Of a stretch of DNA of 62,476 nt, positions 3,101 through 62,476 are shown piece by piece. Location: NCBI GenBank assembly GCA_023515725.1, contig JALDTO010000235.1, positions 715,381-777,856 on the forward strand. Direction: 5' to 3'. The position numbers and the translations under genes were made by a program. This DNA is from Amoeboaphelidium protococcarum X5. Lineage: Eukaryota > Fungi > Aphelidiomycota. The first letter of the stretch is position 1. Every line of letters starts with the position of its first letter. The notes beneath the pieces were generated by a model. The model made no database searches. It had not been told where the DNA came from and saw nothing but the letters and a program-made list of their open reading frames with translations.

Positions 3101-3820
3101 TTGGTAGTAATTCTAAAAGGCCTGGAGTGACACTTTCAATTCCGCGTCGGAGAGTCCTGCATCCTTCATCGCTGCATACGAATCTGCATTGGGTAATTCG
3201 TCCTTGAAGTCGGTATACTTCGATTACGCGTCCCAGAAGTCTTTCCAACCTGGAAGCAATGCCCTTCTTGAGCTCTTATGGCCCTATAGAATTGCATTTG
3301 AAGGAAGTACGCTGATATTACTCAAAGATATGAAGTGATTGGCATTGCTTGGAGTGGACCAGGCAATGTGAAGGGTCTTTAAGTCCTGCAGCTTTAATCC
3401 CTTAGAGTCTTGAACATATCTCTTTGGAATAAAGGTGCATCCTCCGCTATTACTGATTATTTTATCTTCTACCTTCACAATTTAATCGTGTAGGGCTATA
3501 ATGACACCTAACGCATTGGCAATTGCAGCTATATGGAACTGTGCCAAGTATACACCATCAGTTTCAAGACTACGCACTAATTCTAGATATTCCCCCTATG
3601 AGTGCTCATACCTCATGTCACAATAGACACTCTTATTGTCTTTTACTTCTTTCAATGATAAGTTCTTTACCTTCTTCCACTTCTTCTCCGTACCATACAT
3701 GCTGTATGATATCGCTCTGGATAAGCAATTACCATCTCCTAAAGGATCATAAGTGATAATACTGTCTAGAATATCTGAACTTAAATAAATATTGACAAAT
3801 GATGCAGATTTATTATTCAT
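138..3820 (-). CDS. MULE transposase with N-terminal OTU-like cysteine protease, FAR1-type Zn finger, DDE core and SWIM finger; one frameshift at ~2342-2345
   Basis: Code-6 translation: GDGNCLSRAIS...NHFISL (OTU); C...SKKTNC...HNH (FAR1/WRKY-like); ITIDST, YSDKD, CFWH, AESFN (MULE D, D, CxxH, E); CSCCMPVTYGIPCRH (SWIM); KGRPR near the C-terminus; TGA at 138-140. The frame changes in a G4 run (TTG GGG TGA vs GGG GTG ATT). Confidence 0.88.
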
Positions 3821-25326: not shown

Positions 25327-25537
25327 GTGAGCGAACAACAGGTGTGTGAACATTGAGTGAGAAAAGAGAACGCCACACGACCGCACGCCTTACCGAATTC
25401 GGATGACTCTCAATAGATCTGCTGTTGCTCTCCTCAATTCTCCGGAAACGTTTAGTTCAATACATAATACGACCGATTGCAATCTCATTATAGATAGCTA
25501 ATAGAAGCAGCTAAATTAATAGTAATCGCACAACAGA

Positions 25538-57607: not shown

Positions 57608-60600
57608 TCATGGGGTACTATATACGCTCAGTGATCCCATATCAATAAAAAGTCGTCCAACATGAATAGCAGCTCCGGCCAGGATGATTTAATGAATAGT
57701 CACATATGACACCACCTTCATTCCGATCGAGGGAACAACAATGAGAAAATTAGGTAAAACCATCATCAGTCGTGCCAGACCCTTCAGCAAAATATCAACC
57801 GTGCTAATACCTTCAACCTTGGAATCTGTATCTCTAGCGAGGATAAAATCTTTAACCATCACGTTGATGATCATGTACACATTCGGCACAGCAGACAAGA
57901 GCAAACCAATAAAAGCACCCCAAGGAAATCCAGTAATCTATGGCCAAGTGGCCATCCATCCAGTTAGGAAACCGAGAAATTGCGTAAGCCAACCGATAAA
58001 TCTTACGTTGACACCAACCGTAGTCAGAGTGTCTGTGTACCAAGACCAGGGAAAGTTGCACATGAGAGAGAGGAATTGGAACGGCATCCGTATTAGAAAT
58101 AGCACAGAGTTCAAGTCAGTTACGAAACCAACCAATGCAGAGAGAAACTGCCCGACAGAATATGCGGATCCTAGTATGTAGGAAACAGATTTGCGGTACA
58201 TATTTCGAAGTCGAGTAGAATTCTGGTTCGGCACCTGCATGGCAAAGTCAACCAGATTGTCTACGTACTTCTCAGGTTAAGAGGTGGCCACTAGCACATT
58301 AACTTCCTGCTCTGTAAATATATTCTTGCCAGCATTAAACATTTTGAATCCAACAGTGACAGGTAAAGCGGCACACAGAGAAAATAGACCATACAGTGTC
58401 AACTAAGCTTTGCCACGGGTCACCACTTTCTCATAAAAGTCTGTGATGAATGGAATCCTAAGACGAACGCTCATGATCTTGTCAAATATGTTCAGCAGCA
58501 GATTGAAATACAACAAGATGACCTGCAACGCCTCTGCAACCAGAATCTATATTGAATATTAGAATAATCGACTAATTGTTCCAAATATAGCAGTAAAATT
58601 CCAACTTCGTTAGCCCAGCTCATTTCCAAGCGATTTGAACTCCTGCAAAATAGCAGACGCATTATTTTTCATTATATCAGACATGCTCTTGATAGTATCG
58701 GATGCGAGCTATTTAAATGATGCATGATCAGCAGGATTAATATCAGCTTACAATTGACCAATATTGTTAGACACGATATCACCAACATAGGTACCCTGAA
58801 TGTCAGCCGGACCACCACTACCTTGGAACTAAGTATTGAGAGCAGGATTGGACGTCAAGTTCTAATAAAGTTATCTATTAGACGTTGTGACCAGCGATCC
58901 GAAAGAATCAAACTGACCAGTAGTGAACAACGTGCTAGCTTGAGATGATAGATTACCCAGCGTCTCCACCATGCTCGATAGATCATTACTGAATCTTCCA
59001 TTGGCACCAGTGACATTAGTTCTGATGAATGTCGGCATCTTGGCGTAGTGAGAGAGCAAGATCTTGTGGTTCATCAAAACGTCATCCCAATTGAACAGTG
59101 CAACGATGAACTTGAATATGTCGCGTATGACGAGGCCAATTTTCTTTAATATTCCAACAAGCACAGGTACTAGAGTCTAAACTTACTTGACTAGAAGTTC
59201 AATTGTTCCCTTGGGCCCTTTGATAATCAGATTCAGTCCAAACTCTATAGGCGTAACAAAAATAACCTCACAGTCCTTGACAGCTTGAACCAAATCATCA
59301 ATACCCAGTCCTTTATTGATCATCTCGCCAAATGGTACCACCGCAATAACATCTCTCATCGCTTCTACAGAATTCACAGCAGCACTTTTCACACCAGCAT
59401 TGAAGCTATTTATGAATCCATTCTTGCCCTCCTTCCATGCAGTGGCATTAAAGAATGACTTTGGCAAAGTGACAAATACGTCTTTAAACACGTCGCCAAC
59501 GGATTGGGCAGCAGTTTTTATCTTGCCCCACAAGTTACTAAAGAAACTACGCTTATGAAGCCGAACTTTTCTACCTGCTTGAACTCTATCATATTCTGCA
59601 ATCTCCAATTGTCGCTTCCGTATAGATTTAAAGGTGTGCTTAATGAAGCGAACTCTTCCATCAGATCCATCTTTGTCACGATTGAATCGAATCTCAAAAG
59701 GCTCTTAAACATCATTGGATATCCGTCTTTAACTTTAAGCGCCACTATACACAGTTTGAGCATAAACAAAATTGCTATGAGGATGATAAGCAGCTTTACA
59801 ACTTTTCTGGCGCTTCAAATCTTCAAATAAAGATCGTCTAAGGAGCCGCGGATGACTTTCATCAGTCGACACTATATTACTTTACAGAATCGGGAGAATA
59901 AGGCTCTTCATAGTACTAGCCACGGCGTCAATATCTCCATTGGACGGCACTTCAGTGTTGTTGAACTTATCCTACATATACATTTAGAGCCGCACAGGAT
60001 CTATACTGGCAAGACTGTGTAAAGCCGCCGTATTGACAGGGAAGGCAACAGCTTCATAGTCAGGCATAAAATCAGCATGTACTTTAATCAAGGGCATGTG
60101 AAGCGCGTCTTCGTCAGATATCTCATCAGGGTGAACCACGGAAAATACCACTTTGCCCAACATATTGGATTGCATATAAAAATACTGATCCTGTTTTACT
60201 GTACGCAGCTAATTAACACCAAGAGTATCATTCCATTGAGAAGAGAAAATCTATAAATCGCCAGGACCATCGTGCCATAGAGTCAATACAATGTTAGGGA
60301 CAGACAAATCTCCAAGTAAATCATTCTAACCCGTCCTTGGCTCTACTACAAATCTATGCGCCGACACATTTCTAAAGCATGGATCATCTTTACAATCACC
60401 AACACTCCCTTCTTAATTGTAGTCTTGCATAAATTTACTCTGCACCTAAATCCAATAAGGAGATTTCGAAATCCAGCATCGTCCATTCACAGCAACATAA
60501 TCAGGCGGGCATCCATCAACGACATATTAGTGATAATCAGCTGCAAATCCACCAGCCTCAGAATTATTATGCATAAGAGATTACGATTAGTTATTCTACT

Positions 60601-60958
60601 ACTAAAAATTAACACTGAAGTCTTTCAGTATATCTGGAATCATTTCCTCTTCATCTATCTGTGCGGTGATATTAGCAGAGATCACATCCTTATCTGGCAT
60701 CGTAAACGTGGTATTATCATTGAATAACTCATATTTTAAAGAGTCTAAAACTTTACTGCTATTAGTGTTCATTGACACTGTTTCATTGACTCCAGTAGTT
60801 AAATTATTTCGCGTAACTGTATAAGTCATATTGGTCTATATCAAATCCTCAGCATCGGTGACATTCATCACACTCTAACAATTTACAACCATAATCGTCC
60901 ATGCAATGAACGTAAACAGCATCTATTGTACTATATATTACCGCTGCATTAACATCAT
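57608..60958 (-). CDS. Large (~1115 aa) putatively secreted protein with hydrophobic helical C-terminal third; function unknown
   Basis: Six track fragments share one code-6 frame; N-terminal hydrophobic signal (MLFTFIAWTIMVVNC), Cys-rich segment, KR-SFFSNLWGKIK, LFNWDDVL, IPFITDFY, several TM-like helices. Confidence 0.8.
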
Positions 60959-61206
60959 CAATTCTAATTTCCGTATTATACTATTGTATTATTATTATAA
61001 TCTACTAGAAGGTAAGAAAGGCGGCGCACAGACGATTACAAGATCTGTGATTACATCGGTGTAAGGCAGCATATATTATCGACTTGCCCCTGATCACGGT
61101 ATTTAATCTGATAAGACTCGCGTCCGTCACCTGTTTTTTTTTCTCCTTATCATCATATGACATTGTTTCAACTAACGCATCACGTAATACCGAGTTGTCG
61201 TATAAC

Positions 61207-62327
61207 ATGGAACAAAACACGTTTACATCGGTGATTTAATCCATTGAGAATTGTTTGCAATGTTGCATATGTTTGTCTTTACTCTCTGGGCCAGTTCGAA
61301 CTGGCTGTCTTCACGTGTTTTGCAAGTAGTGTTTAGACACTCATCTATAGGAAAGTTTGAATAGTCAACAAGGTACATCAGCTGCTTGTCCTCTCTGTTA
61401 CAAAAGATTGAATCTGGGGAGTATCTTGATTGATAAGAAGATTGAAAAGGTTGTGGTCAATTTTCTATAATGCAAGCAACTGCTATAGGACAAAATGTAA
61501 TTAGGACAGCTTATGAACGCGTCGTAATAGTCTCCCACCACGGAAGATCCTATTCCCAAGTTGAATGACAAAAGTGAACGGAGCGCGTCTCTGAAACAGA
61601 AAACAAGGGTGCCGCAAACTCTGAAACGAAGCAACACCACAGATTTAAGTTTGTTCTCTGTGAAACGCCCTCATAAGGTTACTTCTGTGTAAAGGCCTAG
61701 TACTTCATATACAAGGCAACAGAATGATACGTTGATATCGAAGAAGGCTCGGACTTGTTCAATGATGCCACTTGCGAATGACAGTGACTTATCATAGCTG
61801 AAGAAAACTAAAGAATAGCCTCGTGAAGTTGTCGTGTGTTTTAGTGGATTTGATCCGGATGTGGGGCTGCCCAAGTTTATCAACTCTGAAAAGTTTGCTT
61901 AGTATGGGATGGATTTGAAATTCACATACAACATTGAGTAGCCAACTACCCATTTGGTGGTGGAAGGAAACGTAGCAAGAGTTCCACCAGAGACCTTCAA
62001 AACTCTTCTAGCATCCATCAGACGCGTTGCCATCATTGAATTGAGATGGCTGATTGACAGTTACTATGCCTAGCGTTGGCTGCACGAAGATTAGTATTTG
62101 ATCAAAAGTCCTGTTAAGTACTAAAAGTTTTAATTAGACCGTGTGGAAACGTTCTTTAGTCGCTGCTGCTTAGTCCCATACGGTGCTCTGAACTCTTTGA
62201 CTTACGAGAATATCAAGCAGATATCCTAGTAGTTATCAACATAAACTGTCAATATCAAGAGTCTACAGTCCGTGAATGTTGTAGACAAAGTGGCGAATAT
62301 TTTAATAATTGTGGGACTAGAGACAGG
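61207..62327 (+). CDS. BRCA1/BARD1-like RING + BRCT protein, 3'-truncated by the telomere (no stop codon)
   Basis: C3HC4 RING CCICLSLLSGPVRTGCLHVFCKQC...CPLC; BRCT VVCFSGF...TTHLVV...TFKTLLA...WLIDS...WLHEDQY; the frame continues into the repeats. Confidence 0.8.
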
Positions 62328-62476
62328 CAGGGTTAGGGCAGGGTTAGGGTTAGGGCAGGGTTAGGGCAGGGTTAGGGCAGAGTTAGGCAGGGTTAGCAGG
62401 GTTAGGGCAGGGTTAGGGGCAGGGTTAGGGGCAGGGTTAGGGTTAGGGCAGGGTTAGGGCAGGGTTAGGGTTAGGG
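62326..62476 (+). repeat. Telomeric array of mixed TTAGGG and CAGGG units (dominant 11-mer TTAGGGCAGGG)
   Basis: G-rich strand runs 5'->3' to the end of the sequence: cagggttagggcagggttagggttagggcaggg... Confidence 0.95.

Follow-up and report, generated by a model that had tools for sequence, protein, structure and literature searches.

A composite CAGGG/TTAGGG telomere at a healed chromosome end of Amoeboaphelidium protococcarum, with a candidate telomerase RNA template

The G-rich array at the end of the analysed DNA of Amoeboaphelidium protococcarum is a native telomere of this organism and lies at a real chromosome end. It is composed of two kinds of units, CAGGG and TTAGGG. Our overall reading, which we consider fairly probable, is that this native telomere is copied by telomerase from a 12-nt template encoded at two homeologous loci (contigs C146 and C312), and that this particular end was healed de novo. 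The source organism is a parasite of algae and belongs to the aphelids, the sister group of fungi; its genome is organised into two subgenomes, and telomerase reverse transcriptase (TERT) is present as two homeologs.

Structure of the terminal array

The analysed DNA (referred to below as the window) is a stretch of 62,476 nucleotides corresponding to positions 715381-777856 of contig C233 (assembly G000), and it ends at the contig terminus. The array takes up the last 151 bases of the window and reaches the final base of the contig (Table 1). The initial annotation of this end described a composition of CAGGG, TTAGGG and a few slipped variants, and the unit parse confirmed it: two G residues are followed by 11 CAGGG, 11 TTAGGG and 2 TTAGGGG units, together with single copies of TTAGG, TTAG and CAGAG. 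The array opens with GG-CAGGG-TTAGGG, and each CAGGG is then followed by one, occasionally two, units of the TTAG type with a run of 1-4 G. Doubled TTAGGG, also mentioned in that annotation, was found three times (at 62344, 62437 and 62465). Tandem Repeats Finder reported a period of 11 for the array, with 14.2 copies, 80% matches and a score of 174. The opposite, left edge of the window carries a TTATTCGGCCCA-like motif four times within 110 bases (1-110).

Table 1. Coordinates of the features discussed in the text (positions without a contig or locus label refer to the window)
Feature	Position	Strand	Remark
Telomere array	62326-62476	+	G-rich strand 5' to 3' toward the contig/chromosome end
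Shared terminal six bases GAGACA	62320-62325	+	Last identity with the homeologous chromosome C200
Unique gene-bearing sequence directly abutting the telomere	59800-62325	.	Similarity search, two genome places
TERT, PF12009 region	C98:1357223-1357612		Profile match
TERT, PF12009 region	C9:69624-70013		Profile match
Candidate template site	C146:812005-812015	+	CTAACCCTGCCC, then AAT
Candidate template site	C312:8333-8343	-	CTAACCCTGCCC, then AAT
Conserved block	~L053:2840-3358
Core of the conserved block	L053:2960-3345		95.3% identical between subgenomes
Predicted long-range helix	L053:2971-2989 / 3272-3293		17-19 bp
Predicted long arm	L053:3040-3270
Predicted P5	L053:3154-3161 / 3210-3217
Predicted P6 hairpin	L053:3162-3194
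Predicted 4-bp hairpin	L053:3198-3209		UUCG loop
U-tracts/A-tracts	L053:3148-3152, 3176-3181, 3198-3202, 3239-3243
(TG)n microsatellite	L053:3094-3117
NOP7	L053:3535-5400

Occurrence of the repeat in the genome

Pattern scans covered the whole assembly (23.6 Mb, 346 contigs). A 22-mer of two composite units occurred 14 times in the genome, compared with no occurrence of its reversed control, and all of its sites, bar two internal ones (on C98 and C205), were at contig ends with the G-strand pointing outward. Scans for the composite and for (CAGGG)3 revealed arrays capping at least 18 contig ends (the total of 18 includes the ends added by the (CAGGG)3 scan), and the G-rich strand was directed outward in 18/18. 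Contigs C233, C146 and C214 look complete from telomere to telomere, because they carry the repeat at both ends; for C233 this corresponds to 777,856 bp. Three consecutive TTAGGG units were found nowhere in the assembly by the whole-genome pattern scan, and none of the other ends was of the pure TTAGGG kind.

Using a cut-off of 25 bits, the TERT RNA-binding domain (PF12009) was identified in two copies, on C98 (91.4 bits) and on C9 (90.8 bits). The 18 outward-oriented ends, the presence of TERT and the homeolog that reads through the addition point (see below) all bear out the earlier claim that the array is a genuine telomere.

One of the internal sites is a 155-bp telomere tract (C98:1311770-1311930, L025:1370-1525) in outward orientation, which stops at TTAG/AATTC, i.e. 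at a GAATTC site. Homeology to C9, from position 25331 onward, is seen in the right flank and not in the left; TERT is located about 45 kb to the right on both C98 and C9. The tract represents either a misjoin or a broken end to which a telomere was joined.

In-frame TAG codons (and one TAA) are present in both TERT copies and in the NOP7 gene discussed below. They are consistent with the published report (10.1101/2024.07.18.603678) that Amoeboaphelidium protococcarum reads UAR as glutamine. With TAG and TAA as sense codons, lists of mechanically called ORFs seriously underestimate the genes of this genome, and such ORFs are short near the end of the window.

Unit composition at all ends

The unit order was tabulated for 2071 nt from the 18 ends, split before every C, and the composite CAGGG/TTAG pattern recurred at all of them. 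The units were CAGGG (106 copies), CAGGGTTAGGG (38), CAGGGTAG (15), CAGGGTTAGG (13), CAGGGTAGG (10), CAGGGTAGGG (9), CAGGGTTAG (5), CAGGGTTAGGGTTAGGG (5) and CAGGGTTGGG (3). Plain CAGGG is thus the commonest unit genome-wide, and it prevails in the inner part of most arrays. The statement of the initial annotation that CAGGG is never doubled is correct within this window and fails genome-wide, where CAGGG-CAGGG is the commonest junction; this end and that of C57 simply happen to lack doubled CAGGG.

The arrays show an outward gradient, from plain CAGGG inside to CAGGGTTAGGG outside. Plain CAGGG, CAGGG+TAGn and CAGGG+TTAGn were counted 48, 21 and 7 times, respectively, in the inner third of the arrays, and 16, 5 and 36 times in the outer third. 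The 18 arrays start with GCAGGG, GGCAGGG or AGCAGGG, two of them with GTAGCAGG, and none opens with TTAGGG.

The two G-runs behave differently. The run after CA has a length of three in 234 of 250 cases, whereas the run after TA consists of one, two, three or four G in 24, 28, 66 and 7 cases, respectively. TTGGG units were observed at the ends of C57, C137 and C214 and in the internal C98 tract. It had been feared that some of the variants at the contig end were read errors. This worry is weakened by the fixed run after CA and the variable run after TA: a generic homopolymer error would affect both runs alike, and only the one after TA varies. The asymmetry also places the translocation point of telomerase within the G-run after TTA.

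Healing point of the analysed end

No subtelomeric repeat was found in the sequence directly preceding the array (from 59800 onward). These 2.5 kb have only two places in the genome, i.e. the end itself and an internal homeolog on C200 (C200:463895-466419), which is 93% identical to C233 up to window base 62325. From 62326 onward the two diverge, C200 continuing into unrelated unique sequence and C233 into GGCAGGGTTAGGG. The break and healing point is located between 62325 and 62326. Because C200 continues past the exact start of the array, the telomere at this end was added de novo onto a chromosome truncated relative to its homeolog.

The opposite end of the same contig (C233:1-118, L055) is almost pure (CAGGG)n finishing in GGGGTAGGGGTAGG-type units, and the right end, unlike this left telomere, opens directly with 11-mers.

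Genome search for the template

Patterns of 11 to 14 nt, taken from the C-strand repeat at five offsets, were searched for in the whole genome; in combination, these scans detect any exact template that is about 13 nt long or longer. Reversed control patterns gave 1-4 matches each, and for this reason a match of 11-12 nt is not significant by itself. The initial annotation had postulated a single extended template, 5'-CUAACCCUGCCCUAACCC-3', used in alternative registers. The idea of one template with several registers is still the best explanation of both units. On the other hand, the 18-nt sequence itself had to be abandoned: its constituent 12-mer CCCTGCCCTAAC is without any non-telomeric occurrence genome-wide, and CCCTAACCCTGCCC is internal only at a telomere-to-telomere junction on C205. 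The search of non-telomeric loci that it had recommended was productive in another form, since it yielded a shorter candidate at C146 and C312 and no 18-nt version.

This candidate, 5'-CUAACCCUGCCC-3' followed by AA(U), is the sole non-telomeric match of at least 12 nt kept by both subgenomes. The C146 and C312 loci are homeologs with 92% identity over 6 kb, and the two sites agree in sequence (Table 1). For realignment the candidate offers an overlap of one to three C residues, versus a second CUAACCC in the 18-nt template proposed earlier. A 20-mer spanning the candidate template had no match in metagenomes.

Three other loci were considered and rejected. A 23-nt template-like stretch at C205:67236-67258 consists of two very short telomere tracts in head-to-head arrangement. 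To its left lies a multi-copy element, truncated here but reading on in its other copies, followed by CAGGGCAGGG; on the right, behind a short composite C-strand, the flank corresponds to homeologous sequence on C155, which has a different continuation. The whole palindrome (C205:67200-67270, L043:1470-1540) arose either through the fusion of two healed ends or as a chimera of the assembly. A (CAGGG)3 run at C264:306357-306371 (L063:3008-3022), examined as a second template, is without a homeolog and directly borders a multi-copy element; the element family is partly tandem and has more than 40 genome matches, and the sequence on the other side is unique. Finally, the match at C135:58180 (L060, C135:58100-58300) is 11 nt only, occurs in a single copy and adjoins the end of a Tc1/mariner-type transposase, recognised by its SPDLNPIENLW motif.

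Candidate telomerase RNA locus

The candidate 12-mer is located in a spacer of about 790 nt between a divergently oriented upstream gene and NOP7 (pescadillo), relatives of whose analysed piece carry PF06732. Part of this spacer forms a conserved block, and the identity of its core between the subgenomes (Table 1) may be set beside that of NOP7, which is 95.7%, 97.1% and 85.9% at codon positions 1, 2 and 3, respectively. Identity falls to about 80%, with frequent indels, in the spacer segments beside both start codons. The template itself lies inside a 67-nt stretch without differences between the subgenomes.

Folding of the template-sense strand gave z = -2.23, with 1 of 100 shuffles being as good, compared with z = +0.20 for the opposite strand. 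In the predicted long arm, 5/5 substitutions at paired positions keep pairing (as G-U or A-U), and this wobble-type retention holds on the template-sense strand only; indels in the arm are confined to the (TG)n stretch and the apical loop. A predicted long-range helix, which would enclose this part of the fold on the 5' side, ends about 12-13 nt 5' of the template; two of its pairs are broken by substitutions between the homeologs. The minimum-energy fold also contains a three-way junction, in which the order of P5, P6 and the 4-bp hairpin corresponds to the CR4/5 topology. One homeolog substitution keeps a P5 pair, although two near-identical sequences offer no real covariation.

No supported pseudoknot could be defined in the predicted fold of the block, and no 3' motif of the Sm or H/ACA type was found. 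An Rfam scan of both candidate loci (L053 and L054) returned no telomerase RNA family (vertebrate, ascomycete, Saccharomyces or ciliate) at E <= 10. The NOP7 piece led to relatives in the form of 41-42% identical fragments only, with no close relatives for covariation. The block also contains several U-tracts and A-tracts (Table 1), such as a pseudoknot with a U-A-U triple helix would need. A CTTT(T)GTG-palindrome motif is present in it three times, and these copies could be bound by transcription factors, as in a divergent promoter. The (TG)n microsatellite, the only indel-prone spot of the core, differs from its C312 homeolog by a 4-nt deletion and three changes.

Judging from the sequence comparison and the predicted fold, the block probably represents a transcribed candidate telomerase RNA of about 400-500 nt. 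The case for such a locus is built on elimination of other sites, conservation in both subgenomes, constraint, strand-specific structure and fit to the arrays.

Proposed copying mechanism

According to the proposed mechanism, the two TERT homeologs would copy the 12-nt template within the predicted noncoding RNA encoded upstream of NOP7 on C146 and C312. The template positions are numbered 5'-C1 U2 A3 A4 C5 C6 C7 U8 G9 C10 C11 C12-3', followed by A13 A14. Synthesis would begin on the 3' CCC, giving the order GGG-CAG-GG-TTAG, and full copying from C12 to C1 would produce GGGCAGGGTTAG. At C1 the terminal G could re-pair with C12, C11 or C10, which would leave TTAGGG, TTAGG or TTAG before the next CAGGG. 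The G-run after CA would be constant at GGG, as it is copied through C7-C5, between U8 and A4.

Departures from the full cycle may be derived from the same template. If translocation took place early, after CAGGG, its GGG would re-pair with C10-12 and a doubled CAGGG would result; re-pairing of a terminal AG with U8-C7 would give doubled TTAGGG, and re-pairing of TT with A14-A13, 3' of the template, would give the TTGGG unit. With the first copying on the 3' CCC, every array would be expected to start with one or two G followed by CAGGG. The candidate template thus fits the fixed and variable G-runs, TTGGG, the doubled units and the GCAGGG starts. When the 18 arrays were tiled with each possible permutation, the candidate product needed 359 copying segments, the second fewest of 11 rotations (range 354-436).

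Two observations count against this mechanism. Realignment by a single base is weak, and by pairing alone AG on U8-C7 should win, yet doubled TTAGGG is rare. Moreover, the inside-to-outside gradient from CAGGG to the 11-mer is not accounted for by the template alone. We infer, and only suggest, that new, short seeds are extended mainly by short cycles and established telomeres mainly by full ones. An extension of this idea would be two modes dependent on the state of the end: healed breaks would receive CAGGG/CAGGGTAG and established telomeres 11-nt copies, the gradient would be a record of healing, and many ends would be truncations that had been healed, perhaps after breakage of a regular kind (programmed or linked to a life stage). 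We offer this extension as a speculation, possible but on balance rather doubtful.

Alternative explanations

The telomere may be real and the match at C146 and C312 nevertheless a chance 12-mer in a conserved divergent promoter upstream of NOP7, with the true telomerase RNA being unassembled or its template being interrupted or longer, e.g. the 1.6-repeat template of the initial annotation. This is the rival to be taken seriously, although we regard it as unlikely. The 11-mers of the control patterns do match 1-4 times each, the block carries repeated palindromic motifs and has no Rfam match, and the assembly is split into 346 contigs. However, a second exact template of about 13 nt or longer is absent from the assembly, the segments adjacent to the start codons are poorly conserved, and the middle block is constrained like codon positions 1-2. 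Folding and wobble-preserving changes are strand-specific, and the permutation of the template together with its AA flank predicts the unit variants that were observed. Alternation of two telomerase RNAs or templates, one for CAGGG and one for TTAGGG (e.g. one per parental subgenome), seems very improbable. The template is identical at both homeologous candidate loci, the sole internal (CAGGG)3 lies at the edge of a multi-copy element without a homeolog, and internal runs of three TTAGGG are absent. The existence of two subgenomes, two TERT copies and pure CAGGG tracts would suit such a system, but the strict interleaving of the units, in which about two consecutive TTAGGG are the maximum, is unlike random use of two enzymes.

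Still less credence can be given to a sequencing or assembly artefact, in which basecalling errors or consensus collapse would have turned TTAGGG into the composite. Odd units such as CAGAG and CATGG do look like errors, but 18 independent ends and the 155-bp internal tract share one structure, the replacement of TTA by C is not a homopolymer-type error, variation is restricted to one of the two G-runs, and a genomic template matches the composite. Telomerase-independent upkeep, by recombination or rolling-circle copying, appears equally far-fetched: the arrays begin at unique break points without donor homology, the RNA-binding domain is intact in both TERT copies and the heterogeneity of the units bears the signature of template slippage, even though short telomere-like tracts are found at junctions with repeated elements.

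Comparison with known telomere systems

If a single 12-nt template is indeed copied over either 5 or 11 nt, the telomere would constitute a natural experiment on how template boundaries are defined, how realignment works with minimal pairing and how faithfully repeats are added. The candidate RNA locus makes telomerase copying testable in the sister lineage of fungi, and its NOP7 neighbour might serve as an anchor for finding telomerase RNAs in other early-branching fungal relatives. In addition, the arrays mark points of de novo healing and so provide a readable history of chromosome truncation between the subgenomes.

The initial annotation had not recognised the repeat from other taxa, and no published description of the composite 11-mer as a telomere was found in open-access full text, where the uses found were unrelated. 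In the open-access literature, we found no report linking Amoeboaphelidium to its telomere repeat, no account of the telomere repeat or telomerase RNA of any aphelid, only unrelated matches for CAGGG with "telomeric repeat", and no telomerase RNA for a fungal line outside Dikarya or for early-diverging groups. In metagenomes, a 27-nt composite gave no terminal array; its eight matches were short internal runs in degenerate TnAGGG/TCAGGG arrays on unrelated contigs (29-65% GC). Four contigs from JGI marine metagenomes (L069, L073, L074 and L075; Ga0209302_* and Ga0115007_*) are GC-rich (57-65%), belong to unrelated organisms and contain an internal degenerate mix of TCAGGG, TTAGGG, TAAGGG and TGAGGG with short CAGGG/TTAGGG alternations; L069 and L075 have an identical flank.

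De novo telomere addition (chromosome healing) is known in ciliates and in nematode DNA elimination. The end described here resembles these cases in that its repeats directly follow unique sequence where the chromosome is truncated in comparison with its homeolog; it differs from them in that nothing here shows the breaks to be programmed. The RNA invites another comparison. Opisthokont telomerase RNAs of the vertebrate and fungal type share a template, a boundary helix, a pseudoknot and a CR4/5 three-way junction (PMC4993307, PMC9564094). By its predicted fold, the candidate would resemble them in having its template near a long-range helix, an arm ending in a junction of P5, P6 and a 4-bp hairpin, and a length of about 400-500 nt. 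It departs from them in lacking an Rfam match, a definable pseudoknot and a visible H/ACA or Sm motif, and in its realignment region of only 1-3 nt.

As regards the repeat itself, animals and most filamentous fungi have TTAGGG telomeres, with the G-strand running outward, made by TERT with an RNA template. The TTAGGG component and the outward G-strand are common to these telomeres and to the one studied here. In contrast to them, runs of three TTAGGG are missing here and CAGGG, itself the commonest unit, is obligatory between TTAGGG units. Variable G-runs, as in this aphelid, or two unit types per template, as proposed for it, occur in the Cryptococcus-type TTAG(3-5) repeat and in the mixed repeats of Paramecium and Plasmodium, but none of these is known to join a T-less pentamer and a hexamer in one 11-nt copy. 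Telomere units of 11-12 nt, their length set by a longer template, are found in some Hymenoptera, in Allium and in Aspergillus oryzae; there, however, the arrays are reported as regular.

Parallels in behaviour are offered by the irregular telomeres of yeasts, i.e. TG1-3 in Saccharomyces cerevisiae and GGTTACA with variable C/G in Schizosaccharomyces pombe. For Saccharomycetaceae, a published account describes long and diverse telomere repeats and templates (PMC8211666). Heterogeneity produced from a single template, through abortive copying and several registers, and a repeat longer than 6 nt would be the shared features. The sequence and the lineage are different, and so is the pattern, as here a short (5 nt) or full (11 nt) cycle would be combined with a variable G-run at the translocation point. 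Irregular and long repeats made from single templates are thus already known in yeasts, and what is new is the aphelid composite.
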